The translations under genes and the position numbers were made by a program. This document shows, one piece after another, positions 6,233-62,169 of a stretch of DNA of 64,000 nucleotides. This DNA comes from Macrostomum lignano. Its lineage: Eukaryota. The notes under the pieces were generated by a model. The model had not been told where the DNA came from and searched no databases. It saw only the letters and a list, made by a program, of their open reading frames with translations. Position 1 is the stretch's first letter. Each line of letters opens with the position of its first letter. The stretch lies in the NCBI GenBank assembly GCA_002269645.1, contig NIVC01002502.1:62001-126000 (forward strand), in the 5' to 3' direction.

Positions 6233-10239
<4,007 letters not shown>

Positions 10240-10327
10240 CAGCCAACTGGTGATGCGGCTGAGCCAAGCAAGGAAACTGGAGATCTCATCTGAAACTATA
10301 TATGTAACACTGAGCTTTGTGGCGTTT

Positions 10328-11050
10328 TGTCTATGGTAAAACAGTGTGTCTATGGTTTTGTCTGTGGTAAAACAGTGTGTCTATGGTTTTGTCTGTGGTA
10401 AAACAGTGTGTCTATGGTTTTGTCTATGGTAAAACAGTGTGTCTATGGTTTTGTCTATGGTAAAACAGTGTGTCTATGGTTTTGTCTGTGGTAAAACAGT
10501 GTGTCTATGGTTTTGTCTGTGGTAAAACAGTGTGTCTATGGTTTTGTCTGTGGTAAAACAGTGTGTCTATGGTTTTGTCTGTGGTAAAACAGTGTGTCTA
10601 TGGTTTTGTCTGTGGTAAAACAGTGTGTCTATGGTTTTGTCTGTGGTAAAACAGTGTGTCTATGGTTTTGTCTATGGTAAAACAGTGTGTCTATGGTTTT
10701 GTCTATGGTAAAACAGTGTGTCTATGGTTTTGTCTGTGGTAAAACAGTGTGTCTATGGTTTTGTCTATGGTAAAACAGTGTGTCTATGGTTTTGTCTGTG
10801 GTAAAACAGTGTGTCTATGGTTTTGTCTGTGGTAAAACAGTGTGTCTATTGTTTTGTCTGTGGTAAAACAGTGTGTCTACTGTTTTGTCTATGGTATGTC
10901 TATGGTAAATCAGTGTGTTGACGGTTTCGTCTATGGTAAAACAGTGTGTCTATGGTTTTGTCTTTGGTTAAAACTGCAGTCACAGTGTGTCTATGGTTTT
11001 GTCTGTGGTAAAACAGTGTGTCTAGGTTTGATTGTGCTAAAACAGTGTTT
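10328..11050. repeat. 31-bp minisatellite GTCTATGGTTTTGTCT(G/A)TGGTAAAACAGTGT downstream of C16orf89
   Basis: Contiguous units with no spacers, about 20 copies. Confidence 0.95.
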
Positions 11051-14044
11051 TTTATAGTTTCGTAAGTCCACAACACACAAGATGAGAAATCTTAAGTTTA
11101 TTGCTAGAAAGCGATGAAGCGCCCTTAATGTTTGTTTTTGGTCAGATGTCGCATGTTTGGAAAAACAACACTTAATTTCATGAGTCTACGATTTGAAGGC
11201 CGATTTCCTCAAAGGTTCAGTTTAGAGCATGCTTTATCTGGTCAGTGGAAAATTCCAGTATCAACATAATTTGTTTTCAGTCTGCAGCCGTGTCACTTTA
11301 AGAGTTTCTGCCTGCTATTGCAACCGCCCAAGATTATCGATAACTAAAATCAACGTCCAACTAAAATATATCAACAATGACTTTTCCTGCATCAAGTCCG
11401 TAGCAAATTATATATGCGAGTATACATACACTCGGTTAATTTTGATTCAAACAAATATTAGATTTTTTGTTGTTTGTTCATCTTTAAAAGTTATTTGATT
11501 AATATTTTTTCCACTTTAGTACATGCGCTATGCATGGGTACAAGCAAGAAAATTACAATCTTACGTATAGCTCGTACATAATTTCAATCTCGGACCTTTA
11601 TTGTAGACTATAACCATTTTTGTTTTTAGCGATTTTAAATGTACTATTAGACAGTCTATGCAACAATGAAAGTGAAACCCAGAAAAATTTAATGTATGTA
11701 TGAATCGCAAATAGTATACACTAATACACGTGGTTGTTTTTTGTAAGACATCCTCCTGCGGATGGACTAGCTATACATGTAATTTCTTGCATTTCAGCCT
11801 CCTCGTTTCGAGTCAACTTACATGTAGTAAAGGGCTAATTCTATAGCGGCAATACGAGCATGCAGGATGCAGTATCGGCTCATAAAAAATCATACCTTAA
11901 GCGCTCAGTTGTAGTCTCATAGCAGCTGCCGCTTAATTTTCCTAGTAGTTTCATGCCTAGTATTGTCGATACACTATTTACTCTCGATAATGTACTGCTT
12001 GACGTACAAGGCCAGATAGCTACCATATGTATAAACTACTACTGTAATCCGTTAAAAAGTTGACTCTCAAATTACAAAACGCTGTCCCTCTGCGCAAAAA
12101 GAGCAAATCAGCGAAAGCACATCTCGCACAAAGACGACGTCCAGTAAATGGATTATGGGATGCTCGTGGCGGCCCAGCACCTCCGATTCGGAGGGGGCGG
12201 TGGTTTGGCTGGTCACCCCCTCCTCCAGCGAATTTTTAGAATTAGAGCAACGGCATTACGCTTAAATCTCACAAAAACGCATACTAAAAAACTATGGTTG
12301 GTCATCCCACGGAGGATGGGAGGATTGTCACGTGTTTTGTCGTGACGAAGAAATACTAGTTGAGACAACACGGCGGTTTGTAGCGGTAGCACTGGCAATA
12401 TCGTGGCAACAAGTTGGCCGTAGGCTTGTTTATTTGAGTAGTAGTCAGATTTACACAAAGGTTAACAGTTTCAATATAGTGGACTACTGTACTGGGCACT
12501 GGCGGCAGCGCAACAATAAGTTGAGTTAAGTTGAAGGCGGTTGAGCACGATGAAGGTGATCCCAAGTGGCGAATGATGGCAGTGAGCAAACAGTGCAGTG
12601 GCACTAGGAGAATAGACTGGCAGTGGAAAGGCGTAAACAGGTCTGGCTGGCGAGACGGGCCCAGACAGGGTGGGCCGTGGCGAGAGATAAGGCAGGCACG
12701 GAGAGAAGGCAAGAGAGAGAAAACGCAAGGAAGGAAAGGAGAGAAAGAAGGAACGAAAGTGAAAAACCCAGCCCGCCGCCAGACGGGGGTTAATAAGGAG
12801 CGCAAAAGGGGGTAGCATAAAACACGGAGAGTTTCATTGGCTGGCGAGAGAACTTGAAATTATCGATCGTGCCAAAATTCACAGACGAGCGCAAGGCCTA
12901 CCAAATACACAGTGAATTAGCAGTTGATACAGATTATTTGCACGCTACTACAAGTAAACGTTAAAATAAACTATTGGAGAAATTAAAATGAGAAATAGCA
13001 AGGGAAACTACAGTCCAATGGCCCTTTTGCGGGACCACTTAAACTAGCAACGTCACAGGATGGTCACCCCTCGGCCCCCAGGGAGCTAGGAGGGTGCATG
13101 GTGACCCGGAGGCTGCAGCCCCTCTGCCCCGCCTGCATCGGCGTAGCCACTGGGAATAACTAGAATAATAAATGTAACATTGTAAATTAACGTGTTAATC
13201 AGATTGTTACAAAGCACGATAACTATAAAATATGTCTGTTAGGGTTTAATCGTGATTTTTTACAGTTACAACAAAACCGAATTATAGCACCAAAATATTT
13301 GTCTTTCTAAGAATATCTAATAAGTGCTCCTATCGTCTCTCTACTTGCTTCGTTTTTCTATGCAAATCGTATTCAGCGCTAATTTGAAAAGCATCATTTG
13401 TCATCAAAATCTGACATCAACTTAATTTTAATTATTTAAACTAGTCATAGAAGAATTGCGCGATAGTGTTGGTTTCAAGAAGAAATATTCGCTTCGTATT
13501 TTCCAAGGGGTACACATGCAGATTAGAGCGTCAGACAAATGAGAACACTGACATAGATGGAGCTAGCTCAATAGTACAACTACATACCTCATGCTCATGG
13601 CGCATACTAAATATCTTCTTCTAATCTAATAGTAATATCTAATCTAATGTAATGAAATACTCTAGAAACAATTATTGTTAGGAACTTTAGTGAGGGCGAC
13701 TTGCCAGGGTGAATTGCCAATATGCATAGTTGAAATTTTGACAAAATTATCACTGTTTTTCTTTTTACTTTTCAACAGATTAGCTTAAATTTTGCCCCTT
13801 GTCAAGAAACAACTTTAATATATGCTAAATAATTATGTCTAGCTACTACAAGAGGAAAAAGGAATTAAAGCCGTAGGCTATAGCAAAAATTGGCAACAAA
13901 TGTTTTTTATGTGGTCCCTGTGGTCCCCACCCCATGCATTTTAGGTCAAAACTGTCTTTTAGGCTATATTGCAAAGGTTTTACCATTTTGGATATTTTTA
14001 TTCATAGATAGGGGCCTAAAGGATAAAAAGCTAAAAATGATAGA

Positions 14045-24956: not shown

Positions 24957-27900
24957 TCACTCGAAACCGCTGCCGTTGCCATCTGGCTCGGAGCCGCCGC
25001 CCATGGACTGGTGCTGCTGCTGCTGCTGCTGCTGAAAGTCTGGTCGAATCGCCCAGTCAGGCGCGCCAGGCGGCACCAGTCTGGCGCTGCGGGCGCCCGC
25101 GTCGCGCCGACATTTTTCTAGCTGGGCGCGCTGCTTGACGGTGGCGAATCGCCGCAGGAACATCGAGTCCAGAGCGGATTTGATCTCTCTGACCCGGTCG
25201 GACTCCCACACTAGCTGGCGGACGCGCAAGTTCTCAGACTCGTCCTCCTCGTCCGACGATGTGAGATCCCGTGTGAGCACCAGGCGGTACTGCTCAAGAT
25301 CGTCCGGGGTCAGGGACGGCAGCAGCGACTCGAACGCTTTTTGCCTGCGGCTCAGTTTCTGGGCAGAATGTGTTGCACAGGATTGCAGACAGTTAGACAT
25401 GCCTGGCAGCTTAGGGATCGATATCCTCACTGTGGGAGCTTAGGGATCGATATCCTCACTGTGGGAGCTTAGGGATCGATATCCTCATTCTGGGAGCTTA
25501 GGAATCGATACCCTCACTGTGGGAGCTTAGGGATCGATATCCTCATTCTGGGAGCTTAGGGATCGATACCCTCACTGTGGGAGCTTAGGGATCGATATCC
25601 TCACTGTGGAAGCTTGGGGATCGATACCCTCACTGTGGGAGCTTAGGGATCGATACCCTCACTGTGGGAGCTTAGGGATCGATATCCTCACTGTGGAAGC
25701 TTAGGGATCGATATCCTCACTGTGGGAGCTTAGGGATCGATACCCTCACTGTGGGAGCTTAGGGATCGATATCCTCACTGTGGAAGCTTGGGGATCGATA
25801 CCCTCACTGTGGGAGCTTAGGGATCGATACCCTCACTGTGGGAGCTTAGGGATCGATATCCTCACTGTGGAAGCTTGGGGATCGATACCCTCACTGTGGG
25901 AGCTTAGGGATCGATACCCTCACTGTGGGAGCTTAGGGATCGATATCCTCACTGTGGAAGCTTAGGGATCGATATCCTCACTGTGGGAGCTTAGGGATCG
26001 ATATCCTCACTGTGGGAGCTTAGGGATCGATATCCTCACTGTGGGAGCTTAGGGATCGATATCCTCACTGTGGGAGCTTAGGGATCGATATCCTCACTGT
26101 GGGAGCTTAAGGATCGATATCCTCACTGTGGGAGCTTAGGGATCGATATCCTCACTGTGGGAGCTTAGGGATCAATATCCTGATCTAGGTGTATCCGGGC
26201 ACTAGCATCTTACGCTGTTCCTGCGCAGATATTTCCTGGAATCCTTGCGCCAATTTAACAAAGTTGTAAAAACGCATTTTCGAAGTTCGCCTTGAGGAGT
26301 TCATACGAAAAAATGAAAATGATGATTATAACTAGCTAAAAGCAATTACAATAGCTTAACTATTGAAGCATATTGCAGAGATTGAAGTATGCTATAGATT
26401 TAACACTGGGCAAACTCAATTAAAGTTCAACAGCACACGGATACCTGTTTGAGCTTGTTGCACCTAGCGGCAGACCTGCGCCTAATACCAATCCATTTAG
26501 TCTCGTTAATAAACTGGCTGCGACAAGCGCCTGAGTGACAGTTTATAGCAAATTATACAGTTATATAAGAGTTGTTTAATCGACATTTCAGCCTTGATGG
26601 CCTGTGGCTCCACCGAACGAGTGAAGGCTGCCTGGGTTCACTTTGATACAGTGAACTAATACGTTTTCAGTATACTAATCTACATTTAATTTTCGATTAA
26701 AGACTTACTGAAGCAACTGCAACACCTTCTCTTGGTCCTCTGGTAAGCCTTCAACCTTCCCCAGTCCTATGGTGGGCTTCCAGTTCCAAGGTCCTATGGT
26801 GGGCTTCCAGTTCCAAGGTCCTATGGTGGGCTTCCGGTTTCAAGGTCCTTTGCTGGGCTTCCAGTTCCAAGGTCCTCTGCTGGGCTTCCAGTTCCAAGGT
26901 CCTATAGTGAGCTTCCAGTTCCAAGGTCCTATGGTGCGCTTCCAGTTCCAAGGTCCTATGGTGGGCTTCCAGTTCCAAGGTCCTATGGTGGGCTTCCGGT
27001 TTCAAGGTCCTTTGCTGGGCTTCCAGTTCCAAGGTCCTCTGCTGGGCTTCCAGTTCCAAGGTCCTATAGTGAGCTTCCAGTTCCAAGGTCCTATGGTGGG
27101 CTTCCAGTTCCAAGGTCCTCTAGTGGGCTTCCAGTTCCAAGGTCCTATGGTGGGCTTCCAGTTCCAAGGTCCTCTGCTGGGCTTCCAGTTCCAAGGTCCT
27201 ATAGTGAGCTTCCAGTTCCAAGGTCCTATGGTGGGCTTCCAGTTCCAAGGTCCTATAGTGAGCTTCCAGTTCCAAGGTCCTATGGTGGGCTTCCTGTTCC
27301 AAGGTCCTCTAGTGGGCTTCCAGTTCCAAGGTCCTATGGTGGGCTTCCAGTTCCAAGGTCCTCTGCTGGGCTTCCAGTTCCAAGGTCCTATAGTGAGCTT
27401 CCAGTTCCAAGGTCCTATGGTGGGCTTCCAGTTCCAAGGTCCTCTAGTGGGCTTCCAGTTCCAAGGTCCTCTGCTGGGCTTCCAGTTCCAAGGTCCTCTA
27501 GTGGGCTTCCAGTTCCAAGGTCCTATGGTGGGCTTCCAGTTCCAAGGTCCTCTAGTGGGCTTCCAGTTCCAAGGTCCTATGGTGGGCTTCCAGTTCCAAG
27601 GTCCTCTAGTGGGCTTCCAGTTCCAAGGTCCTATGGTGGGCTTCCAGTTCCAAGGTCCTCTAGTGGGCTTCCAGTTCCAAGGTCCTATGGTGGGCTTCCA
27701 GTTCCAAGGTTCTCTAGTGGGCTTCCAGTTCCAAGGTCCTATGGTGGGCTTCCAGTTCCAAGGTCCTCTAGTGGGCTTCCAGTTCCAAGGTCCTATGGTG
27801 GGCTTCCAGTTCCAAGGTCCTCTGCTGGGCTTCCAGTTCCAAGGTCCTATAGTGAGCTTCCAGTTCCAAGGTCCTATGGTGGGCTTCCAGTTCCAAGGTC

Positions 27901-30183
27901 CTCTGCTGGGCTTCCAGTTCCAAGGTCCTATAGTGGGCTTCCAGTTCCAAGGTCATATGCTGGGCTTCCAGTTCCAAGGTCCTATAGTGGGCTTCCAGTT
28001 CCAAGGTCATATGCTGGGCTTCCAGTTCCAAGGTCCTATGGTGGGCTTCCAGTTCCAAGGTCCTATGGTGGGCTTCCAGTTCCAAGGTCCTATGGTGGGC
28101 TTCCAGTTCCAAGGTCCTATAGTGGGCTTCCAGTTCCAAGGTCCTATGGTGGGCTTCCAGTTCCAAGGTCCTATAGTGGGCTTCCAGTTCCAAGGTCATA
28201 TGCTGGGCTTCCAGTTCCAAGGTCCTATAGTGGGCTTCCAGTTCCAAGGTCATATGCTGGGCTTCCAGTTCCAAGGTCCATTGGTAGGCTACTAGGGTCC
28301 TATGGTGGGCAGTCAATACTAATCCCTTCCCTGTCCAAGGTGGGCCTTAAACACAAAGCAGCGCTCATCCAACACTTGTAAAGATATTGAACTCGTTGAT
28401 AGAAGTCACTGAAGCAATGAGCAGCATTATAATAAAAACGATGTAGCACGTACCCCATTTCTTCGCTTATATTTTCGACTGTTGTTGACCCAGGAGGCCA
28501 GCAGCTTTTTAGTAGAGTAATACAAATTTGAGGCCATCACTACAGCGAGTCGTGCATTGGCAAAGTCGCATCAATTTGAGACACTTATTATTATGAATAT
28601 AAAATGAATCGCTAGCGAGTTGTGAAGATCTACTACTCATTGGCACGAGTGTACGACAATTAGTACACAAAATTGCATAATTTAATTAGTTAATTAATTC
28701 ATATATAGCTTTAGCAATTTACAAAGTAAATTGAAATGCTCAGTTATTTTAACATTATTAGCAGACTTCAAACTCGAGCAGGAGCTAATTTTTTTATTAT
28801 AAAATTATTAAAACTCACGCATTTTATTCAGATTCCTACTGTCAGTAGGAGTAAAATAATATTAATAGCAATAGTTTGTATGATAAAAAACTATGACGCA
28901 ACAATTATAAATTTTTTCTACTTTAAGTAGGGAAAACGACTTTAAATCTGTTTTTATTTCCGAAATAAAAATATGACGTAACAATAGAATATTTGAAAAT
29001 CTGACCTTTCCACGTGTCGGGCTCAGCAACAATACCGGACGCCAATTGAGCTTGCTCGATAACCGTCTGGGCTACAGCTTGATTGACCGTGTGCTCCCAG
29101 CTGTTTAATAGTACATTTAGGGAGTCATTAGAGCGCGAACTAATCACTAAACTAAATAATAATGCAAGTCTTTTATCGAACTTACGGTTTGGAGAAATCA
29201 AACAGATGAGGCCCGCTACCGCGCAGATTCTTGTAAGTGTCTTTAAGAAGGTTCTAAAAATTTATTTGTTAAAAATCATATCTTAGATTAACTAAATTGC
29301 ATGTTACTTTAAGTAGCTCACTCCTCGATTTTTACTAAAAAAACTAAACTCTTATTTTTATCTTACTAAAAACGACATTTTCTATCATACTACTTAAGTA
29401 AGGATAGCTCAGCGTCTCCATGGATTTTTTTGGCTAAATTTGCAAGAAAAATACATAAATTAAAGAAAATAAATAAATCAAGTAGGAAAACTTCGCAGTC
29501 CTCACCCGAACATCGGCGCCACCGCCGGAGACTGCGGCGGCAGCGGCCGCAGCAGCTGCAGCGGACAGCTGATCGTCGCATTCAATCAGGGATGACCGGC
29601 CAGCGTGTTGATGCTGTTGGCCTCGCTGCCTGGTGCGCTGCTGAAACTGCCGACTACTGCTGCCGCCGCTCTCCTCCCCCATAATCATGACGCAATCGTC
29701 CGCTCCATCGTCAAATGTCTCGTCGACAAAATCGCCAACGCTACCGGTGGCACCACCTATGGCGAATTTTTCTTCATCAACCAGCAGGGAGGAGGCGGAG
29801 GCTGGGGCCTGACTGGATTCGCTCGGCTCGGCTTTGAAGCTGTTGCTGGCGCAGTGCCGCTTGCTAGGCGGAGGTTTGGCCGCCGTTTCCATGGCAACAG
29901 CGGCTGAAGCGGCCCGATCGTGTAGCAACGTTAGTTGACGATTGGCTTCGTCGAGCTGATGACGCAGCTGGCAGGCTGACGGGTGCATGACGTCAACCAG
30001 CTGGTGCTGCAGATTCTGTACCAGACGCATTGCGGACACCAGGTCTTCTAGGGGCATGCTCTCCAGCAGCATGCCCGCGTTGAGCAGGGTGGACTCGAAC
30101 AGGGTCAGGGCTGAGAAGCCCACGCCGCCCGACGCGGCCGACTGGTTTAGCATTGCAGAAGGCGATTGAACTGCTGCGGCCAT
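24957..30183 (-). CDS. Paralogue A: uncharacterised C14orf93-like family protein (~442 aa with variable exon A1 or A2)
   Basis: Exons 30183-29506 (phase 0), 29253-29186 (NLLKDTYKNLRGSGPHLFDFSKP, phase 2), 29100-29006 (WEHTVNQAVAQTVIEQAQ..DTWK, phase 1), one of A1/A2/A3, then 25358-24957 (KLSRRQKAF..DLTSSDEED..VRQLVWESDRVREIKSALD..SARLVPPGAPDWA). All GT..AG; homologous to B and C exon by exon. The C14orf93 likeness of the SSDEE/WES/LD/S.R..P...P.W region is recalled knowledge. Confidence 0.82.
25408..26180. repeat. 29-bp minisatellite GCTTAGGGATCGATATCCTCACTGTGGGA in the last intron of paralogue A
   Basis: Direct inspection; each unit contains TTAGGG and ATCGAT. Confidence 0.96.
26214..26290 (-). 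CDS. Paralogue A candidate variable exon A3 (77 nt): (G)ELRKCVFTTLLNWRKDSRKYLRRNS
   Basis: Acceptor ctcctcaag|, donor |gtaaga, phase 1 to 0. Clearly similar to A1 (LLxxW..[DN]SRKY.RRN). Confidence 0.72.
26445..26530 (-). CDS. Paralogue A candidate variable exon A2 (86 nt): (G)ACRSQFINETKWIGIRRRSAARCNKLKQ
   Basis: Acceptor tcactcag|, donor CAG|gtatcc, phase 1 to 0, same length as A1, basic. Sequence similarity to A1/A3 is weak. Confidence 0.55.
26765..28280. repeat. 27-bp minisatellite (GGTGGGCTTCCAGTTCCAAGGTCCTAT)n between exons A1 and A2
   Basis: About 56 units; in-frame 9-codon unit gives the 508-aa MVGFQFQGP ORF. Confidence 0.97.
28454..28539 (-). CDS. Paralogue A candidate variable exon A1 (86 nt): (V)MASNLYYSTKKLLASWVNNSRKYKRRNG
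   Basis: Acceptor gctgtag|, donor |gtacgt, phase 1 to 0, open frame. Confidence 0.7.
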
Positions 30184-30297
30184 GCTGGCTGTGAGACACT
30201 GCTCGGCTGTGGGGCGAACGGGGCCAGTGACAAGTGATGGATGGACATATATGGCCATAGTTGACAGCTATGGACAGCTGAATTAGATTTGCTGTAA

Positions 30298-31765: not shown

Positions 31766-34700
31766 CTACTGCCCGTCCCCGCTATAGTCCTGCTGGGCTC
31801 CCGCAGGCGCCCAGGCCGGGTCCCGGGCCCACGGCGCGCAGTCTGGCGGCGGCGGCCGCTCGGACTGGCAGGCGAGATTTCGCTGAAGCCGCTGCAGCTC
31901 GGCGCGCTGCTTCTCGTCGGCCAGCTGTTCGACAAACACGCCGTCAAGATGCTGCTTGACGCTGCGCAATTCGGCGCTCTCCCAGGCCAAGCAGCGAACT
32001 CGGGCGGTCTCAGCTGAGTCCAAGTCCGCCCCGGTCTCCTCATCCGAGCTGGTGTAGTCTCTGGTTAGCACGCTCTGGTAGCGCTGCCGAGACTGCTCAT
32101 CCAGGCTGTCCTTGATTGCCTCGTAGCTTTTCTGGCGACGGTTCAGCTTCTGCGTGGGTGGGGGAGTTGGGACAGGCGGGCGGGTGAGAATGGGGGCTGG
32201 CCTGAATGTGTGAGAATGAAGGCCAGAAGGTGTGTGAGTATGAAGGCCTGAAGGTGTGTGAGAATGAAGGCCTGAAGGTGTGTGAGTATGAAGGCCTGAA
32301 GGTGTGTGAGAATGAAGGCATGAAGGTGAGAATGAAGGCCTGGTGTGTGAGAATGAAAGCCTGAAGGTGTGAGGATAAAGGCCTGGTGTGTGATAATGAA
32401 AGCCTGAAGGTGTCAGAATAAAGGCTCGAAGGTGAGAATGAAGAACTGAAGGTGTGAGGATAAAAGCCTGGTGTGAGAATGAAGGCCTGAAGGTGTGAGA
32501 ATGAAGGCCTGAAGGTGAGATGAAGGCCTGAAGGTGAGAATGAAGGCCTGAAGGTGAGAATAAAGGCCTGAAGGTGAGAATGAAGAACTGAAGGTGTGAG
32601 GATAAAGACCTGGTGTGTGAGAATAAAGGCCTGGTGTGTGAGAACGAAGGCCTGAAGGTGTGAGGATGAAGGTTTGAATGTGTGTGAGAATGAAGGCCTG
32701 AAGGTGTGAGAACAAAGGCCTGAAGGTATGAGAAAAAAGTCCTGAAGTTGTGAGGATGAAGGCCTGAAGGTGCAAGGATGAAGGCCTGAAGGTGAAGCGC
32801 CCCAAGCTAACTCACAATTTGTACTTTTAATAACGAATTAAACTTGGACTGCCTAGCTTTGGCAAGAAAATCACGCCTATAACGCTGCGTGTACCAACTG
32901 CGCAGGTATTTCATAGACACTGCTGTAAAAATATTGTCAGGCATCATGGTATGGATAATTTGAAGGAATAGAAATATCAATTGAAAGGTTTCAAACCGGT
33001 TGCCGAATCATCGCAATTAATTGTGGAGCCTTATTAACTATTCATATTTCTGAATTGAATGGTATCAAACGATCCGTACGAGTACACATCGAGTGCATAT
33101 TCAAGCCAGGAGTGACTTATTTACCTTGAGGCTAGTAGGAGCTGGTCGGAATAGTGTACATTGAGGCTAGTGGGGGCTGGCCGGAATAGAGTGTATGTAC
33201 ATTGAGGCTAGGTGGGCTGGTCGGAAAGAAGTGTACATTGAGGCTAGGGGGGGGGGGCTGGCCGGAAAGAAGTGTACATTGAGGCTAGGGGGCTGGCCGG
33301 AATAGAGTGTACATTGAGGCTAGGGGAGCTGGTCGGAATAGTGTACATTGAGGCTAGTAGGAGCTGGTCGGAATAGTGTACATTGAGGCTAGGGGAGCTG
33401 GTCGGAATAGTGTACATTGAGGCTAGGGGAGCTGGTCGGAATAGTGTACATTGAGGCTAGTAGGAGCTGGTCGGAATAGTGTACATTGAGGCTAGTAGGA
33501 GCTGATCGGAATACTGTACATTGAGGCTAGGGGAGCTGGTCGTAATAGTGTACATTGAGGCTAGTAGGAGCTGATCGGAATACTGTACATTGAGACTAGT
33601 AGGAGCTGATCGGAATAGTGTACATTGAGGCTAGGGGAGCTGGTCGGAATAGTGTACATGGAGGCTAGTAGGAGCTGATCGGAATAGTGTACATTGAGGC
33701 TAGGGGAGCTGGTCGGAATAGTGTACATTGAGGCTAGGGGAGCTGGTCGGAATAGTGTACATTGAGGCTAGGGGAGCTGGTCGGAATAGTGTACATTGAG
33801 GCTAGGGGAGCTGGTCGGAATAGTGTACATTGAGGCTAGGGGAGCTGATCGGAATACTGTACATTGAGGCTAGGGGAGCTGGTCGGAATAGTGTACATTG
33901 AGGCTAGTAGGAGCTGATCGGAATAGTGTACATTGAGGCTAGTAGGAGCTGATCGGAATAGTGCACATTGAGGCTAGGGGAGCTGGTCGGAATAGTGTAC
34001 ATTGAGGCTAGGTGGGCTGGCCGGAAAGAAGTGTACATTGAGGCTAGGGGGGGGCGGGGCTGGCCGGAATAGAGTGTACATTGAGGCTAGGTGGGCTGGT
34101 CGGAAAGAAGTGTACATTGAGGCTAGGGGGGCTGGTCGGAAAGAAGTGTACATTGATGCTGGGGGGGGGGCTGGCCGGAATAGAGTGTACATTGAGGCTA
34201 AAATGAGGGACAAACATGAATTTAGAAGACCCCCAGAGACTCACAGTCTGCACGAAGATTAACGAATTGAGCTTAGACTGCCTAGCCTTGGCATTATAGT
34301 CGCGTCTAAGATTTTGACTGTACCAATTTCGCAAATATTTTTGCGAAACAGCTGAAACATGTATAAATATTGGAAATTGCACTAGAAAGTTCAGTTGCTT
34401 TAAGAAATAATCAACCTATACTACTTATTAGAAAGGTATATAAAGGACCCATCGCAAAAATGGAACAATACAACAAACTAGTCACGTAGAGCATTAATGC
34501 AAAAAATGTCTTGCAGCCTATAAATAAAAATGGTAATAAAAATTCATTTGCGTAAAAGCGTGCATTTTGGATGGGGATTAGGGATGGTTGCTTATGTTTG
34601 TGAACTGATGTACACATTGCGGGGGATGAGATCTGGGGGTGGTCGTTTATGATTCTTGGGCTGATGTACATCGCGGGGGACGAGATCTGGGGTGGTCTGC

Positions 34701-37700
34701 TTATGATTCGTGGGGTGGTCTTATGATGGGCTGATGAACAGACCACCAATACTCACAGTCTGCAGGCTGATAAGAGAGGAGATCTTGCATTTATCGGTCT
34801 TGGCTTTGAAGCTGCGCTTCAAAAATTGCGTATACCAAATGCGAAGATATTTGAAGGAACTGGCTACAATTTCAAGTATTTTTTTACAAAAATACAATTC
34901 ATAAATCTGTAGTTTTAATATACACGAATGAAATATAACACAAGAATTGGAGTTGTTGCAAGGCCAAGATATGCGACAGATGCTCAAGAGACTTATAATA
35001 ATCTTAAGTGTTTTGTAACTCACAAGAGTGGCTGATATGCTAAAATTCGGTCTCAAACGGCGCTGGTAGGGATAGCGCAAATTCTTAGAGTAATGCGGCT
35101 TTAGGTAACGATGACAAGAGGCTGCAAGTATTGATTTCGGCACAATTGATTTGCTGATAATTATTATGAAAGCTAAATCCTTATGCTTTTACTCGTAAGT
35201 CTCTAAGGCTTCATTTCGCTGCCTCTCCGCCGCATTGCAGTGTTTGAGTTGTTAAAAAGTCATAAGAATCGCCTCAGAGGCACTAGTGAGTTTTTTGCCC
35301 TCAACTCGGGGAGGAATTCAGAAAACAGTTAATAAAAAGCAGCAAACAAATTTAATTGATTTACCAATAACTGTTTAATAATTTTTGTGTTGCCATTTTT
35401 CACCGACTTAATATTGTGATCTCTCTTTAATACGCTGTAATAGTAGGCCTTGAAGTACCGCCCGATCATGGCTACAATACGAGTTGTAAGATCAAAATAA
35501 TACGAAAATGTTATTATTCAGTTCGTTAAGTATTGCCAATTTAAAAGCTTAACTAGCGCAAAGGAGCTGCAGTGCACTTGGCTTGTACTGGCTTGACCAT
35601 TGGCATATTTGATTTAGTAGCCAAATTGAAGGTAAAATTGAGTTGAATCTCTTAATAACCAGCTGATGGGCACCCAGCGTGCAGAAATCTTGCTCAGGTT
35701 GAGCATTGAGCACAGATCAGCCGGATGGATCCCGATCAGATGCCCATCTCAGCTTCTATCCAGGCCGCAGTGACTCAGGTGTCATCCTAAACCAAGGCCC
35801 GAACAGGAAGCTGCGCCCCTCATCATCCGGACTTTGCTTACCGCATCGAAATTCGGCAAACCAATCAAAATCTTCGGACAAGCTAGTACGGCGCTTCATC
35901 TCCAAAAGCTCATGTGAGTCGTTTAAGCTTGTACAATATAAAAATATCATAGCTCTCCAATGATTCCTATTGAGTTCCAATGTGACTTTGACAGATATGT
36001 TGCCTATGGTTCCCTCATCCTTACCACGGAGAGCGTCATTATACCGGCCATTCTGGCGGCGTCTTCGAATCTTTTATAAGTAGGCTTTAGAGTAGACTTG
36101 TAGTACACTCTCAGGTAGTTCTTCAGTGCGCTGTCTGCCATCAGTTGCAACATGATTATTCATATCATGATAATGTGGGTTTCCATTAATTATCCTAAAT
36201 TATTGACGATAGACTTTCCAGGCGAAATTGGATCAACATTAAAGCTCTGATTAGCATTTACTTTTTTAAGTGAAAAGCAGTTAGTTTGAGTTAATTAGTT
36301 AATTATTAACATACTAGAAAATGAGGGGACAATTTTCTGTCCAGACGTTGAGAAACGAAGCCAAATAATATTGTTCGAATCCCGCCTTGCTAGCCTAATT
36401 AATATTTAGCTCATTAAATATGCACAAACACACATCTTTGCGATGGCCCTGCAACGCCCTTTTATAATACTCGTATCATTTCTAGTTTTTAACTAAATAC
36501 GCAAATTGTACTACTGATACTAAGTAGTTTTATTTCAATAAAATGCTAGAAAATTCTCACTGCGCCAGGCTTGCAGATTGGCCGGCCGCTCGCGGCCAAG
36601 CATCAGCGCCTTGTCAATCACCCGATTGGCCGCCTGCACATTGGCCTTGGCCGAATAGGGCAGGGCAAAGTCGAATACGTTGCTGCCAGTCTCGTCTTTG
36701 AGCACTCGATAGGCCCGCCTGAGCACGCTTTTCCACTCGTTGGACAGCTCGCCGACACCGCCGCTGCCGGCGCCGCCGCTGCCGCCCATGAGTGCGGAGT
36801 CGTCGCCAGCCAGGCCAGACGAGCCGGCGCCCATCAGCACCTGCTGGGAGCGACCGCCGCCCAGCCTGCTGCCTCCGAGGCCAGACTGATCCAGCATGAA
36901 GTCCGTCTCCATCAGCACGCAGTCGTCGTCGGAATCGGCCGTTGAAGCCTCCAGTTTCATTGATGTCGCCGGCTGAGAGAACTGCTGCTGCTGTTGCTGC
37001 TGCTGCATGAGCAGCTTCTCCGCTTTGTCCGGCTTCGACGAGGTGCTCGACGAATCAGCAAAGGCAGGTGGAGGCGGCGGGCACTGAAAGGTGCAGAGGT
37101 TGAATGGAGATTGACAATCAACTGCATTTATGCTACTAATAGTAGGTGCGAGATTTCTCAGTAGCGTGCGAACCTCGGGACACACTGCCAAATCTCAGGA
37201 CACACTGCCAAGCCTAAGGACACGCTGCCAACCCTAAGGACACACTGCCAACCCTAAGGACACGCTGCCAACCCTAAGGAAACGCTGCCAACCCTAAGGA
37301 CACGCAACCAACCCTCAGGACACACTGCCAACCCTCAGGACACACTGCCAACCCTCAGGACACACTGCCAACCCTCAGGACACGCTGCCAACCCTCAGGA
37401 CACGCTGCCAACCCTAAGGACACGCTGCCAACCCTAAGGACACACTGCCAACCCTAAGGACACGCTGCCAACCCTAAGGACACGCTGCCAACCCTCAGGA
37501 CACACTGCCAACCCTAAGGACACGCTGCCAACCCTAAGGACACGCTGCCAACCCTCAGGACACGCTGCCAACCCTCAGGACACACTGCCAACCCTCAGGA
37601 CACACTGCCAACCCTCAGGACACACTGCCAACCCTAAGGACACGCTGCCAACCCTAAGGACACGCTGCCAACCCTAAGGACACGCTGCCAACCCTAAGGA

Positions 37701-41002: not shown

Positions 41003-44000
41003 TCATCCAAGGATAGATCCAGCCTCTAATCTAGACGCTTCATCAATAATATCTTCGTCATCGTCGTCCTCGGCGCAGCCGTTCAGATCGTCCGGATCCG
41101 CCGGTCGGGCCCAGGCCGGCGCGGTGGCCGCCTCGGCGTGATGGGCGGCGGCGGCGGCAGCCACAGCCGCGGCGCTGGCGCTCTCGGACCGGTCCACGGC
41201 CCAGTCAGGAGCATCCACCGGAGCCCGCCTGCTGCTCACGTATCCGGGATGCCGCCTGACTCTGGCCAGCTCAGCTTTCTCGCGTTCGTCGGATAATTCT
41301 TCGGCAAAGTGGCCGTCTAGGATTGACTTCAGCCTGGCCGATTCCAGCGTCTCCCAGGGCAGCAGTTTCACGTACAGGCAGCCGTCCGGCTCCTCTTCGT
41401 CCGAGCTGACCATGTCGCGCTCGACCAGGGCGGCCATTCGGTCGCCGGTAGCCGGGGAGAGGCGGTTCAGCGCCAGCAGGCTCTGCAGGCTTCGGCGGCG
41501 CTGCGACAGCTTCTGCGGAGAGGGGGGATGGGCGGGACTAACGTGTCAACTGACAAACTGACTGCTGACAAACTGACTGCTGACTGCTGACAAACTGACT
41601 GCTGACAAACTGACTGCTGACAAACTGGCTGCTGACAAACTGACTGCTGATAAACTGGCTGCTGACAAACTGGCTGCTGACAAACTGACTGCTGACTGCT
41701 GACAAACTGACTGCTGCCAAACTGGCTGCTGACAAACTGGCTGCTGACAAACTGGCTGCTGACAAACTGACTGCTGACAAACTGACTGCTGACAAACTGG
41801 CTGCTGACAAACTGACTGCTGATAAACTGGCTGCTGACAAACTGACTGCTGACAAACTGACTGCTGACAAACTGGCTGCTGATAAACTGACTGCTGACAA
41901 ACTGGCTGCTGACAAACTGACTGCTGATAAACTGACTGCTGACAAACTGGCTGCTGACAAACTGGCTGCTGACAAACTGACAAACTGACTGCTGACAAAC
42001 TGACTGCTGACAAACTGGCTGCTGACAAACTGACTGCTGACAAACTGGCTGCTGACAAACTGACTGCTGACAAACTGACTGCTGATAAACTGACAAACTG
42101 ACTACTGACAAACTGGCTGCTGACAAACTGACTGCTGACAAACTGACTGCTGACAAACTGGCTGCTGACAAACTGGCTGCTGACAAACTGACTGCTGACA
42201 AACTGACTGCTGACAAACTGACTGCTGATAAACTGGCTGCTGACAAACTGACTGCTGACAAACTGACTGCTGATAAACTGACTGCTGATAAACTGACAAA
42301 CTGGCTGCTGACAAACTGACTGCTGACAAACTGACTGCTGACAAACTGACTGCTGACAAACTGACTGCTGACAAACTGACTGCTGATAAACTGACTGCTG
42401 ACAAACTGACTGCTGATAAACTGGCTGCTGACAAACTGACTGCTGACAAACTGACTGCTGATAAACTGACAAACTGACTACTGACAAACTGGCTGCTGAC
42501 AAACTGACTGCTGACAAACTGACTGCTGACAAACTGGCTGCTGACAAACTGACTGCTGACAAACTGACTGCTGACAAACTGACTGCTGACAAACTGACTG
42601 CTGACAAACTGACTGCTGATAAACTGACTGCTGACAAACTGACTGCTGACAAACTGACTGCTGACAAACTGACTGCTGACAAACTGACTGCTGACAAACT
42701 GACTGCTGATAAACTGACTGCTGACAAACTGACTGCTGATAAACTGACTGCTGATAAACTGACTGCTGACAAACTGACTGCTGACAAACTGACTGCTGAC
42801 AAACTGACTGCTGATAAACTGACAAACTGACTACTGACAAACTGGCTGCTGACAAACTGACTGCTGACAAACTGACTGCTGACAAACTGACTGCTGACAA
42901 ACTGACTGCTGATAAACTGACTGCTGATAAACTGACTGCTGACAAACTGACTGCTGATAAACTGGCTGCTGATAAACTGACTACTGATAAACTGACTACT
43001 GATAAACTGACTGCTGACAAACTGACTGCTGATAAACTGACTGCTGACAAACTGACTGCTGACAAACTGACTGCTGACCAACTGACTGCTGACAAACTGA
43101 CTGCTGACAAACTGACTGCTGATAAACTGACTGCTGACAAACTGACTGCTGATAAACTGGCTGCTGACAAACTGACTGCTGACAAACTGACTGCTGATAA
43201 ACTGACAAACTGACTACTGACAAACTGGCTGCTGACAAACTGACTGCTGACAAACTGACTGCTGACAAACTGACTGCTGACAAACTGACTGCTGATAAAC
43301 TGACTGCTGATAAACTGACTGCTGACAAACTGACTGCTGATAAACTGGCTGCTGATAAACTGACTACTGATAAACTGACTACTGATAAACTGACTGCTGA
43401 CAAACTGACTGCTGACAAACTGGCTGCTGATAAACTGACTGCTGACAAACTGACTGCTGACTGCTGATAAACTGACTGCTGACTGCTGACAAACTGACTG
43501 CTGACAAACTGACTGCTGATAAACTGACTGCTGACAAACTGGCTGCTGACAAACTGGCTGCTGACAAACTGACAAACTGACTGCTGACAAACTGACTGCT
43601 GACAAACTGGCTGCTGACAAACTGACTGCTGACAAACTGGCTGCTGACAAACTGACTGCTGACAAACTGACTGCTGATAAACTGACAAACTGACTACTGA
43701 CAAACTGGCTGCTGACAAACTGACTGCTGACAAACTGGCTGCTGACAAATTGACTGCTGACAAACTGACTGCTGATAAACTGACAAACTGACTACTGACA
43801 AACTGGCTGCTGACAAACTGACTGCTGACAAACTGACTGCTGACAAACTGACTGCTGATAAACTGACAAACTGACTACTGACAAACTGGCTGCTGACAAA
43901 CTGACTGCTGACAAACTGACTGCTGACAAACTGACTGCTGACAAACTGGCTGCTGACAAACTGACTGCTGACAAACTGGCTGCTGACAAACTGACTGCTG

Positions 44001-47000
44001 ACAAACTGGCTGCTGACAAACTGACTGCTGACAAACTGACTACTGACAAACTGACTCCTGACAAACTGACTGCTGACAAACTGGCTGCTGACAAACTGTC
44101 TGCTGACAAACTGACTGCTGACAAACTGACTGCTGACAAACTGACTGCTGACAAACTGACTGCTGACTGCTGACAAACTGACTGCTGACAAACTGACTGC
44201 TGACAAACTGACTGCTGACAAACTGGCTGCTGACAAACTGACTGCTGACAAACTGACTGCTGACAAACTGACTGCTGACAAACTGACTGCTGACAAACTG
44301 ACTGCTGACTGCTGACAAACTGACTGCTGACAAACTGACTGCTGACAAACTGACTGCTGACAAACTGGCTGCTGACAAACTGACTGCTGACAAACTGACT
44401 GCTGACAAACTGGCTGCTGACAAACTGACTGCTGACAAACTGACTGCTGACAAACTGACTGCTGATAAACTGACTGCTGACTGCTGACAAACTGACTGCT
44501 GATAAACTGGCTGCTGATAAACTGACTGCTGACAAACTGACTGCTGACAAACTGGCTGCTGATAAACTGACTGCTGACAAACTGACTGCTGAAAAACTGA
44601 CTGCTGACAAACTGACTGCTGACAAACTGACTGCTGATAAACTGACTACTGATAAACTGACTACTGATAAACTGACTGCTGACAAACTGACTGCTGACAA
44701 ACTGACTGCTGACAAACTGACTGCTGATAAACTGACTACTGACAAACTGACTGCTGACAAACTGACTGCTGACAAACTGACTACTGACAAACTGACTGCT
44801 GACTGCTGACAAACTGACTGCTGATAAACTGACTGCTGACAAACTGACAAACTGACTGCTGATAAACTGACTACTGACAAACTGGCTGCTGATAAACTGA
44901 CTGCTGACAAACTGACTGCTGACTGCTGACAAACTGACTGCTGACAAACTGACTGCTGACAAACTGGCTGCTGATAAACTGACTACTGACAAACTGACTG
45001 CTGACTGCTGACAAACTGACTGCTGACAAACTGGCTGCTGATAAACTGACTGCTGACAAACTGACTGCTGACAAACTGGCTGCTGATAAACTGACTGCTG
45101 ACAAACTGACTGCTGAAAAACTGACTGCTGACAAACTGACTGCTGACTGCTGACAAACTGACTGCTGATAAACTGACTGCTGACAAACTGACTGCTGATA
45201 AACTGACAAACTGACTGCTGACAAACTGACTGCTGACAAACTGACTGCTGACAAACTGACTGCTGACAAACTGACTACTGACAAACTGACTGCTGACTGC
45301 TGACAAACTGACTGCTGACAAACTGGCTGCTGATAAACTGACTGCTGATAAACTGACTGCTGACAAACTGACTGCTGATAAACTGACTGCTGACAAACTG
45401 ACTGCTGACAAACTGACTGCTGACAAACTGACTGCTGACAAACTGACTGCTGACAAACTGACAAACTGACTGCTGACAAACTGACTGCTGACAAACTGAC
45501 TGCTGACAAACTGACTGCTGACAAACTGGCTGCTGACTGCTGACAAACTGACTGCTGACAAACTGACTGCTGATAAACTGACTGCTGACAAACTGACTGC
45601 TGACAAACTGACAAACTGACTGCTGACAAACTGACTGCTGACAAACTGACTGCTGACAAACTGACTGCTGACAAACTGACTGCTGACAAACTGACTGCTG
45701 ACAAACTGACTGCTGACTGCTGACAAACTGACTGCTGATAAACTGACTGCTGACAAACTGACTGCTGATAAACTGACAAACTGACTGCTGACAAACTGAC
45801 TGCTGACAAACTGACTGCTGACAAAATGACTGCTGATAAACTGACTGCTGACAAACTGACTGCTGACAAACTGACTGCTGACAAACTGACAAACTGACTG
45901 CTGACAAACTGACTGCTGACAAACTGACTGCTGACAAACTGACTGCTGACAAACTGACTGCTGACAAACTGACAAACTGACTGCTGATAAACTGACTGCT
46001 GACAAACTGACTGCTGACAAACTGACTGCTGACAAACTGACTGCTGACAAACTGACTGCTGATAAACTGGCTGCTGACAAACTGACTGCTGACAAACTGA
46101 CTGCTGACTGCTGACAAACTGACTGCTGACAAACTGACTGCTGACAAACTGACTGCTGACAAACTGACTGCTGATAAACTGGCTGCTGATAAACTGACTG
46201 CTGACTGCTGACAAACTGACTGCTGACAAACTGACTGCTGACTGCTGACAAACTGACTGCTGACAAACTGACTGCTGACTGCTGACAAACTGACTGCTGA
46301 CAAACTGACTGCTGACAAACTGACTGCTGACAAACTGACTGCTGACAAACTGACTGCTGACAAACTGACTGCTGATAAACTGACTGCTGACAAACTGACT
46401 GCTGACAAACTGACTGCTGATAAACTGGCTGCTGACAAACTGACTGCTGACAAACTGACTGCTGACAAACTGACTGCTGACAAACTGACTGCTGACAAAC
46501 TGACTGCTGACAAACTGACTGCTGATAAACTGACTGCTGACAAACTGGCTGCTGATAAACTGACTGCTGACAAACTGGCTGCTGACAAACTGACTGCTGA
46601 CAAACTGACTGCTGACAAACTGACTGCTGATAAACTGACTGCTGACAAACTGGCTGCTGACAAACTGACTGCTGACAAACTGGCTGCTGACAAACTGACT
46701 GCTGACAAACTGACTGCTGACAAACTGACTGCTGATAAACTGACTGCTGACAAACTGGCTGCTGACAAACTGACTGCTGACAAACTGACTGCTGACAAAC
46801 TGGCTGCTGACAAACTGACTGCTGACAAACTGACTGCTGACAAACTGACTGCTGACAAACTGACAAACTGACTGCTGATAAACTGACTGCTGATAAACTG
46901 ACTGCTGACTGCTGATAAACTGACTGCTGACAAACTGACTGCTGACAAACTGACTGCTGACAAACTGACAAACTGACTGCTGACTGCTGACAAACTGACT

Positions 47001-50000
47001 GCTGACTGCTGATAAACTGACTGCTGACTGCTGATAAACTGACTGCTGAAAACTGACTGCTGACAAACTGACAAACTGACTGCTGATAAACTGACTGCTG
47101 ACAAACTGACTGCTGACAAACTGACTGCTGACTGCTGATAAACTGACTGCTGACTGCTGACAAACTGACTGCTGACAAACTGACTGCTGACAAACTGACT
47201 GCTGACAAACTGACAAACTGACTGCTGATAAACTGACTGCTGACAAACTGACTGCTGACAAACTGACTGCTGACAAACTGACTGCTGACAAACTGACTGC
47301 TGACAAACTGGCTGCTGACAAACTGACTGCTGACAAACTGACTGCTGACAAACTGACTGCTGACAAACTGACTGCTGACAAACTGACTGCTGACTGCTGA
47401 CAAACTGACTGCTGACAAACTGACTGCTGACAAACTGACTGCTGACAAACTGGCTGCTGACAAACTGACTGCTGACAAACTGACTGCTGACAAACTGGCT
47501 GCTGACAAACTGACTGCTGACAAACTGACTGCTGACAAACTGACTGCTGATAAACTGACTGCTGACTGCTGACAAACTGACTGCTGATAAACTGGCTGCT
47601 GATAAACTGACTGCTGACAAACTGGCTGCTGACAAACTGACTGCTGACAAACTGGCTGCTGACAAACTGACTGCTGACAAACTGACTGCTGACAAACTGA
47701 CTGCTGATAAACTGACTGCTGACAAACTGGCTGCTGACAAACTGACTGCTGACAAACTGACTGCTGACAAACTGGCTGCTGACAAACTGACTGCTGACAA
47801 ACTGACTGCTGACAAACTGACTGCTGACAAACTGACAAACTGACTGCTGATAAACTGACTGCTGATAAACTGACTGCTGACTGCTGATAAACTGACTGCT
47901 GACAAACTGACTGCTGACAAACTGACTGCTGACAAACTGACAAACTGACTGCTGACTGCTGACAAACTGACTGCTGACTGCTGATAAACTGACTGCTGAC
48001 TGCTGATAAACTGACTGCTGACAAACTGACTGCTGACAAACTGACAAACTGACTGCTGATAAACTGACTGCTGACAAACTGACTGCTGACAAACTGACTG
48101 CTGACTGCTGATAAACTGACTGCTGACTGCTGACAAACTGACTGCTGACAAACTGACTGCTGACAAACTGACTGCTGACAAACTGACAAACTGACTGCTG
48201 ATAAACTGACTGCTGACAAACTGACTGCTGACAAACTGACTGCTGACAAACTGACTGCTGACAAACTGGCTGCTGACAAACTGACTGCTGACAAACTGAC
48301 TGCTGACAAACTGACTGCTGACAAACTGACTGCTGACAAACTGACTGCTGACTGCTGACAAACTGACTGCTGACAAACTGACTGCTGACAAACTGACTGC
48401 TGACAAACTGGCTGCTGACAAACTGACTGCTGACAAACTGACTGCTGACAAACTGGCTGCTGACAAACTGACTGCTGACAAACTGACTGCTGACAAACTG
48501 ACTGCTGATAAACTGACTGCTGACTGCTGACAAACTGACTGCTGATAAACTGGCTGCTGATAAACTGACTGCTGACAAACTGACTGCTGACAAACTGGCT
48601 GCTGATAAACTGACTGCTGACAAACTGACTGCTGAAAAACTGACTGCTGACAAACTGACTGCTGACAAACTGACTGCTGATAAACTGACTACTGATAAAC
48701 TGACTACTGATAAACTGACTGCTGACAAACTGACTGCTGACAAACTGACTGCTGACAAACTGACTGCTGATAAACTGACTACTGACAAACTGACTGCTGA
48801 CAAACTGACTGCTGACAAACTGACTACTGACAAACTGACTGCTGACTGCTGACAAACTGACTGCTGATAAACTGACTGCTGACAAACTGACAAACTGACT
48901 GCTGATAAACTGACTACTGACAAACTGGCTGCTGATAAACTGACTGCTGACAAACTGACTGCTGACTGCTGACAAACTGGCTGCTGACAAACTGACTGCT
49001 GACAAACTGGCTGCTGACAAACTGACTACTGACAAACTGACAAACTGACTGCTGATAAACTGACTGCTGACAAACTGGCTGCTGACAAACTGACTGCTGA
49101 CAAACTGACTGCTGACAAACTGGCTGCTGACAAACTGACTGCTGACAAACTGACTGCTGACAAACTGACTGCTGACAAACTGACAAACTGACTGCTGATA
49201 AACTGACTGCTGATAAACTGACTGCTGACTGCTGATAAACTGACTGCTGACAAACTGACTGCTGACAAACTGACTGCTGACAAACTGACAAACTGACTGC
49301 TGACTGCTGACAAACTGACTGCTGACTGCTGATAAACTGACTGCTGACTGCTGATAAACTGACTGCTGACAAACTGACTGCTGACAAACTGACAAACTGA
49401 CTGCTGATAAACTGACTGCTGACAAACTGACTGCTGACAAACTGACTGCTGACTGCTGATAAACTGACTGCTGACTGCTGACAAACTGACTGCTGACAAA
49501 CTGACTGCTGACAAACTGACTGCTGACAAACTGACAAACTGACTGCTGATAAACTGACTGCTGACAAACTGACTGCTGACAAACTGACTGCTGACAAACT
49601 GACTGCTGACAAACTGACTGCTGACAAACTGGCTGCTGACAAACTGACTGCTGACAAACTGACTGCTGACAAACTGACTGCTGACAAACTGACTGCTGAC
49701 AAACTGACTGCTGACTGCTGACAAACTGACTGCTGACAAACTGACTGCTGACAAACTGACTGCTGACAAACTGGCTGCTGACAAACTGACTGCTGACAAA
49801 CTGACTGCTGACAAACTGGCTGCTGACAAACTGACTGCTGACAAACTGACTGCTGACAAACTGACTGCTGATAAACTGACTGCTGACTGCTGACAAACTG
49901 ACTGCTGATAAACTGGCTGCTGATAAACTGACTGCTGACAAACTGGCTGCTGACAAACTGACTGCTGACAAACTGGCTGCTGACAAACTGACTGCTGACA

Positions 50001-62000: not shown

Positions 62001-62169
62001 GCTCCATCGACTCAAGCAGCATTTGAGCATTGTGTATGGTGCATTCGAATAGCGCTATGGACGAGAATGGCTGGCCGTCGGTTGCCGACGCCCCCGCCGC
62101 AGCGATTGCCGCAGTTCCAGGCAAATCCGGCAGAGAAGGAATGGGTGACTCGCACAATAGGGTGGCCAT
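41003..62169 (-). CDS. Paralogue C: uncharacterised C14orf93-like family protein; one frame disruption in exon 1; 18.4-kb last intron
   Basis: Exons 62169-61438 (FSSIALFECTIHNAQMLLESMELADLVLALRIV.. then, in another frame, SWKQLLRRAYRLLQSEGQELFDFTKS; donor TC|gtgagt, phase 2), 60176-60079 (YSAPGNRAAAEIIINRAV..KSWK, phase 1), 59992-59898 ((N)LFTRYLEQWYRKTLKPTHCKSACRVQMSMDK, phase 0), 41512-41003 (KLSQRRRSL..DMVSSDEEE..VKLLPWETLESARLKSILD..SSRRAPVDAPDWA). GT..AG junctions; phases match paralogue A. Confidence 0.78.
41548..59866. repeat. 18.3-kb 15-mer satellite (AAACTGACTGCTGAC)n with variant units and multi-kb internal duplications
   Basis: About 1,200 units with variants GATAAA, CTGGCT, CTACTG and 7-nt/8-nt short units. 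All SAVSL/SSQFV/QQSVC ORFs are artefacts of this repeat. Confidence 0.99.
60226..61012. repeat. 20-bp (CTGACACACTCAATCTCTTC)n minisatellite in paralogue C intron 1
   Basis: Direct inspection; followed by (AATTCTC)n at about 61020-61065. Confidence 0.95.
61120..61420. repeat. 20-bp (CCACAGCCACTGACCCCAAT)n minisatellite in paralogue C intron 1
   Basis: Direct inspection. Confidence 0.95.

Follow-up and report, generated by a model that had tools for sequence, protein, structure and literature searches.

The window analysed here, i.e., a stretch of 64,000 nucleotides (nt) of the flatworm Macrostomum lignano (positions 62,001 to 126,000 of the forward strand of contig NIVC01002502.1, assembly GCA_002269645.1), carries on its minus strand three tandem paralogues of one uncharacterised protein family, designated C (upstream), B and A. 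The best protein matches are all from M. lignano, and a 21.8-kb locus of the contig agrees exactly with the window in each of 44 sampled 200-nt chunks. Three segments of gene A, designated A1, A2 and A3, probably constitute a cluster of alternative coding exons, homologous and arranged in tandem, one of which would be chosen for each gene A mRNA, a choice that would re-code the middle of a long helix. The A1/A2/A3 set is beyond chance; the use of A1 is shown by a transcript-derived model, and that of A2 and A3 is likely.

Gene A and its candidate variable exons

The anatomy of gene A is given below in window positions. P0001 (PAA53999.1) is a model derived from RNA sequencing (RNA-seq) on the homeologous contig NIVC01002989.1 (L001), and P0009 (30204-28427) is the window's own model of gene A.

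29506..30258, minus strand: exon 1 (from ATG), matching P0001 and P0009
29186..29253, minus strand: exon 2 (NLLKDTYKNLRGSGPHLFDFSKP), matching P0001
29006..29100, minus strand: constant exon 3 (..WEHTVNQAVAQTVIEQAQLASGIVAEPDTWK plus 1 nt), matching P0001
28454..28539, minus strand: variable exon A1, 86 nt, 'SRKY' type, acceptor ..ctgtag, donor gtacgt, peptide VMASNLYYSTKKLLASWVNNSRKYKRRNG
26445..26530, minus strand: variable exon A2, 86 nt, 'RRxAARC' type, acceptor ..cactcag, donor gtatcc, peptide GACRSQFINETKWIGIRRRSAARCNKLKQ
26214..26290, minus strand: variable exon A3, 77 nt, 'SRKY' type, acceptor ..cctcaag, donor gtaaga, peptide GELRKCVFTTLLNWRKDSRKYLRRNS
24957..25358, minus strand: last exon (KLSRRQKAFE..TSSDEEDE..LVWES..), phase 0 start, stop codon included

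Exon 3 closes at 29006 in phase 1, its final D T W K being followed by one base (G) and then by the donor gtcaga, and the last exon opens at 25358, after the acceptor cccag, with AAA CTG AGC (K L S R R). A1, A2 and A3 all lie on the same strand within the single intron interval bounded by these two positions, and all three possess AG/GT boundaries and 3n+2 lengths, being entered in phase 1 and left in phase 0. Their coordinates, lengths and phases are exactly those given in a preliminary description of this DNA, which had also placed, correctly, three candidate alternative exons of gene A at the gene position occupied by the array of gene B. The best splice signals among the three belong to A3 (pyrimidine-rich acceptor, donor gtaaga). 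Within the 3.6-kb intron, only 14 open segments of 56-140 nt with AG..GT boundaries are compatible with the frame, overlapping alternatives counted and A1, A2 and A3 included.

A1 and A3 are similar to each other (z ~6 versus shuffles), and of the motif previously reported for this pair the portion [DN]SRKY.RRN is exact in both, whereas LLxxW fits A1 (LLASW) only, A3 reading LLNW. A2 had been regarded as the weakest member of the set, a view which the comparison with other paralogues overturns: a profile that drew on other paralogues only, with A and B exons excluded, gives A2 the top rank of all 1,955 open fragments on both strands of the window, and A2 possesses orthologues in two other genes (F1 and D8) and is of the type best conserved across paralogues.

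Transcript-derived models

The NCBI annotation of GCA_002269645.1 was built from RNA-seq assemblies using StringTie and TACO, the latter with an isoform fraction of 0.75, by which minor isoforms were removed (PMC5730564); because of this filter, the absence of A2 and A3 from the annotation is weak evidence. In P0001, A1 is spliced between exon 3 and the last exon. P0009 includes A1 followed by intron read-through to a stop 27 nt past the A1 donor (tail ..RRNGVRATSFLL*), and the model is therefore devoid of the conserved C-terminal exon. A3 is used by one model only, namely the fused UniRef entry P0011 (A0A1I8IGX9), the evidence basis of which is not established and in which B, A and downstream sequence are merged into a 'PDZ domain-containing' protein of 1,108 amino acids (aa). 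Both annotations of gene A, i.e., P0009 and P0011, are faulty. A2 is absent from every gene model found. A search of a large protein collection with the exon 3, A2 or A3, and last-exon segment returned only paralogues or nothing, and exact look-up of A isoforms carrying A1, A2 or A3 found none.

Direct evidence for exon substitution at this position of the family is provided by gene G, both homeologues of which hold the variable exons G1 (95 nt) and G2 (77 nt): the RNA-seq-derived model P0023 uses G1 and its counterpart P0170 uses G2, with identical flanking exons. Furthermore, all variable exons are skipped in two RNA-seq-derived models, P0184 (the gene B homeologue on L001) and P0177 (the P0025 gene), in which the upstream exon is joined directly to the last exon, and the resulting frameshift tails (KAEPSPEKLRGNQGQPG* and KAQPSPAQLRTGCHQPQH*) are exactly those predicted. 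The annotated model of gene B, PAA57318.1, equals the reconstruction with exon B5. Of note, the transcript-derived model P0006 of paralogue D uses exon D2, joins the last exon out of frame and ends early (..GKQS*).

Reading-frame lock

Since exon 3 breaks off after the first base of a codon and the variable exons are all 3n+2 in length, the conserved C-terminal domain is reached only with exactly one variable exon included. Single inclusion of A1, A2 or A3 yields a full open reading frame, and inclusion of none, two or all three a premature stop. Skipping or multiple inclusion would therefore end in a premature stop, with nonsense-mediated decay of the mRNA or truncation of the protein as the probable outcome. 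The 3n+2 length was found in every variable exon of the family with determined boundaries. The intron between A2 and A3 (154 nt) is apparently too long for steric exclusion, going by general minimum intron size, and the frame lock is the sole demonstrable rule for exclusivity in gene A.

Constraint since the homeologue split

The homeologous contig keeps the three A exons and six B exons intact, with identical peptides. A1 and A3 show zero differences, A2 shows two substitutions, both at synonymous third positions, and the A exons contain no indels; the intron that flanks them differs by ~3-4% between the homeologues. Taken together, the nine variable exons of A and B have acquired 4 substitutions in 882 nt, every one of them at a synonymous third position, as against 114 events in the 2,700 nt of their +/-150-nt flanks (exon versus flank, Fisher p=3e-10). 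For the seven A and B exons that lie outside any transcript-derived model, the corresponding value is p=1.5e-8. Among the nine codons of SRKY.RRN, A1 and A3 have two identical, five synonymous but different and two replacement codons, and the A2 motif is likewise kept versus F1 and D8 despite codon turnover. As judged from these sequence comparisons, the variable exons are under selection on the encoded protein.

The protein family and the predicted position of the variable segment

Searched with a profile, a collection of 1.84 billion representative proteins yielded 320 relatives at E<0.001. The close relatives looked up by name are all M. lignano 'hypothetical' proteins, and further away the family includes uncharacterised proteins of a hemichordate (Glandiceps, XP_078001082.1), an echinoderm (Patiria, XP_038047259.1) and a mollusc (Potamilus, KAK3591360.1). 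Pfam gave nothing above threshold for the A protein, its parts or eight relatives, a PDB profile search found no sequence relative, and a Foldseek comparison of the AlphaFold model with the PDB gave no match at E<1. The model has a mean predicted local distance difference test (pLDDT) score of 68.7, rising to >90 over most of residues 250-460. In this model the variable segment (residues 306-334) lies inside one long helix (301-349, pLDDT 88-94), so that it is predicted to be the middle of the helix that connects the central helical and C-terminal domains. The segment encoded by each A exon is 26-29 residues long and basic in its C-terminal half. With the variable segment in mid-helix, exon choice would swap the helix surface and, slightly, its length, and the isoforms may differ in function.

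Exon arrays in the paralogous genes

The paralogues in the window and at eight further loci hold the following variable exons:

D (closest paralogue of A; L004): about nine, array 6399-13495; D8 at 12733-12818 is orthologous to A2
H (L008): about six
P0025 gene (L009): five, each 77 nt
G (L005, L006): two
B (window): six, array 32816..36134, minus strand, at the same gene position as in A
B1 36134-36028, B2 35471-35365, B3 35121-35024, minus strand: 107, 107 and 98 nt
B4 34863-34757, B5 34351-34245, B6 32922-32816, minus strand: 107 nt each
C (window): at least one, C1, 59898..59992, minus strand, 95 nt, NLFTRYLEQWYRKTLKPTHCKSACRVQMSMDK, B1 type
B-like genes (L002, L003): at least two each
E (L003) and F (L002): one each; F1 at L002 11854-11936 is used in model P0004

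More than one variable exon is present in at least nine paralogous genes (2-9 each), and a single one in two others. The lengths fall into classes, i.e., 77-110 nt in A-like genes, among which 77 and 86 nt recur across several genes, and 95-107 nt in B-like genes. A tandem pair in which an A-like gene comes immediately after a B-like gene, both on one strand, was found at three non-homeologous loci, namely the window (with its homeologue L001), L002 and L003, which indicates that the two-gene unit was duplicated as a block. Alternative-exon arrays at this position are the rule across the family, and the gene A cluster is real, well-defined and of a known kind. An ancestral order of SRKY-type then RC-type exon fits A and G and does not fit H or D, and was dropped. 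Downstream of gene D (L004 14763-18398) there is a long reverse-transcriptase-like open frame. A fragment resembling the N-terminal part of a mariner-type transposase in the B1-B2 intron (35550-36075, minus strand) was noted by eye only and is unconfirmed, there being no Pfam hit at E<=0.01.

Origin of the arrays

Exon relationships were derived from pairwise scores versus shuffles and from a neighbour-joining tree with 200 bootstraps. A1 and A3 are mutual best matches, with 63% bootstrap support, and the best matches of A2 are D8 and F1 of other paralogues (z 8-10). Further pairs between genes are D1-E1 (z 13-14) and, on the B side, B4-L3Bb (z 16-18), B2-L2Ba (z 9-11) and B1-C1 (z 7-8). Exons corresponding to B1, B2 and B4 occur in C and in the B-like genes of two further loci; for the A1/A3 type, weaker counterparts exist in D, G and H. 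Paralogue D possesses both exon types of A (SRKY and A2), and F possesses the A2 type only. Neither a clade of A1, A2 and A3 nor one of B1 to B6 was recovered in any of the 200 bootstraps, and B-like exons form one group in the tree, with a bootstrap of only 4%.

The preliminary description had proposed that the exon was multiplied separately in A and B, so that repeated multiplication took place at one position of the family. The separation of A- and B-type exons is upheld: no interleaving is seen in the tree, and none of the 38 exons with a best match of z>=4 has that match across the A-like/B-like divide. Recurrent multiplication also stands, as 18 of the 38 best matches are within the same gene (e.g., A1/A3, B5/B6 and D5/D6), the other 20 being in another paralogue. 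What has to be given up is an expansion within A specifically, or indeed within B, since neither array is one gene-specific expansion. A2 being closest to D8 and F1 of other genes, A2-type exons predate gene A, and the A array, from its sequence relationships, is probably a mixture of an inherited type, A2, and an in-gene duplicate pair, A1/A3. The A2 type, common to D and F, would thus have been inherited, and A1 and A3 would have been duplicated later within the gene. The gene A array is one instance of a family-wide birth and death of the variable exon.

Alternative explanations

It could be argued that A1 is the sole working exon and that A2 and A3, although intact in appearance, are pseudo-exons left over from old exon duplications and are not spliced. 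This is consistent with the presence of A1 in all RNA-seq-derived models of gene A and of its homeologue (P0001, P0009), with the lack of any database protein containing an A2 junction, and with the annotated model of gene B showing B5 only. However, A2 and A3 are open and AG/GT-bounded in both homeologues and have acquired only synonymous changes and no indels within an intron that has become ~3-4% different, the A2 motif has outlasted codon turnover relative to D8 and F1, minor isoforms were dropped from the annotation by the TACO setting, and both G1 and G2 are used in a sister gene, such that the relic explanation appears distinctly unlikely. Several observations nonetheless weigh against a working cluster in gene A. 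No transcript-derived model or database protein joins A2 or A3 to flanking exons; A2 resembles A1 or A3 weakly, the homology of A2 being clear by position and not by direct similarity; and in gene A taken alone the exon-versus-flank difference (2/249 versus 23/900, p=0.14) is not significant. Moreover, nonsense-mediated decay in M. lignano is an assumption only, the AlphaFold alignment comprised 21 sequences only, and no docking/selector RNA element was found by an exact-match test of unique intron segments, a test that would miss weak or imperfect structures; the longest direct or complementary matches among such segments are AT-rich and of 9-12 nt.

With regard to origin, a strict reading would have all three A exons multiplied inside gene A, independently of other arrays. 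The mutual best match of A1 and A3 and the fact that no A exon best-matches a B-like exon agree with it; the grouping of A2 with F1 and D8, the failure to recover a three-exon clade, the presence of both exon types in the closest paralogue D and the retention of the A2 type only in F render it highly improbable. At the other extreme, all modern exons may go back to one array that existed before the A-like and B-like subfamilies separated, its descendants having diverged beyond recognition. Such an ancestral array is a possibility, albeit a doubtful one. It accords with the identical position and invariable 3n+2 length in nearly all of the subfamilies compared (A, D, G, H, the P0025 gene, B, C, the B-like genes of L002 and L003, and the P0024 gene) and with the B-like/A-like tandem pair conserved at three non-homeologous loci. 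Against it stand the zero best matches between subfamilies and their different length classes, although peptides of 26-36 residues carry little power in either direction and are too short to decide between one ancestral array and separate arrays for the A-like and B-like genes. A mixed array of inherited and in-gene duplicated exons remains the preferred account for gene A.

A broader proposal, considered unlikely although it would embrace the whole family, is that at least a dozen paralogues each maintain an array of up to nine frame-locked exons by birth and death. If this were true, there would be many isoforms per gene and a large combinatorial repertoire of recognition surfaces on one long basic helix, and such surfaces could suit, for example, nucleic acids or fast-evolving partners.

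Comparison with known exon clusters

Tandem clusters of alternative exons are rare and usually functionally important, and mutually exclusive clusters are exemplified by Drosophila Dscam1 and Mhc. In frame-locked exon pairs, a frameshift results if both exons or neither are included, and nonsense-mediated decay eliminates the product. Mutually exclusive exon clusters that arose by tandem duplication are a known class (reviewed in PMC9013439 and PMC6071210). As in such clusters, the A exons are adjacent, similar in length, identical in phase and located at one intron position, and the use of one exon per mRNA and an origin by tandem exon duplication, both known for the class, are proposed for gene A as well. 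Gene A differs in that its exclusivity is explained by frame only, that its host family is uncharacterised and that A2 and A3 are candidate exons. Similarly to frame-locked pairs, the A variable exons are 3n+2 in length, wrong exon counts lead to premature stops, and zero-inclusion transcripts are annotated in sister genes; unlike such pairs, the M. lignano arrays reach nine exons, and decay is here assumed.

In sodium-channel alpha genes, the duplicated alternative exon 5a/5b was inherited by paralogues (PMC12772994). The M. lignano paralogues are alike in sharing exon types (A2/F1/D8, D1/E1, B4/L3Bb and B2/L2Ba), and the exon types common to paralogues imply that exon duplication predates the gene duplications. 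They differ from the sodium-channel case in continuing birth and loss, with 1-9 exons per gene, about half of which have their closest relative in the same gene.

No description of this cluster or of the gene family was found by literature searches on mutually exclusive exons in Macrostomum and flatworms, and the gene identifier occurs in no searchable paper. The family, for which neither function nor fold is known, has undergone strong expansion in a model organism for regeneration, and its loci are under-described, as the annotation offers a single isoform for each gene, or else truncated or fused models. The frame-locked arrays represent a clean system for exon choice without obvious RNA-structure signals, and also allow the interplay of exon duplication and gene duplication to be studied.

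Intronic minisatellites

Two introns of gene A contain minisatellites:

26764..28290: 27-bp minisatellite, ~57 copies, filling the A1-A2 intron, non-coding
25404..26181: 29-bp minisatellite, ~27 copies, between A3 and the last exon

The A1-to-A2 interval is ~0.6 kb shorter in L001; in general, the minisatellite units differ between introns and paralogues, and the intervals that host them vary in length between homeologues. Tandem repeats make up 15% of the M. lignano genome (PMC5730564). A role for the intronic minisatellites was rejected, and they were treated as filler, because neither units nor interval lengths are kept and the genome is rich in repeats. The short direct matches TTGCTTCAGT and GATTAGTAT, at 28417/26716 and 28324/26680, bracket the 27-bp array, each being present once after A1 and once before A2; they may be a remnant of the duplication from which the exons arose, or coincidental. 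The intron of gene C that runs from C1 (59992-59898) to the last exon of C (start 41512) consists mostly of a 15-bp array (CTGACAAACTGACTG, ~1,280 copies) of 18.3 kb (41550-59862). Throughout the window (1-24900 and elsewhere) there are minisatellites of dozens of distinct kinds, with units of 4-101 bp and, in many cases, a strong strand composition skew. Several of them generate spurious long frames, for example one of 508 aa (26769-28295, plus strand) that lies wholly inside the 27-bp array.

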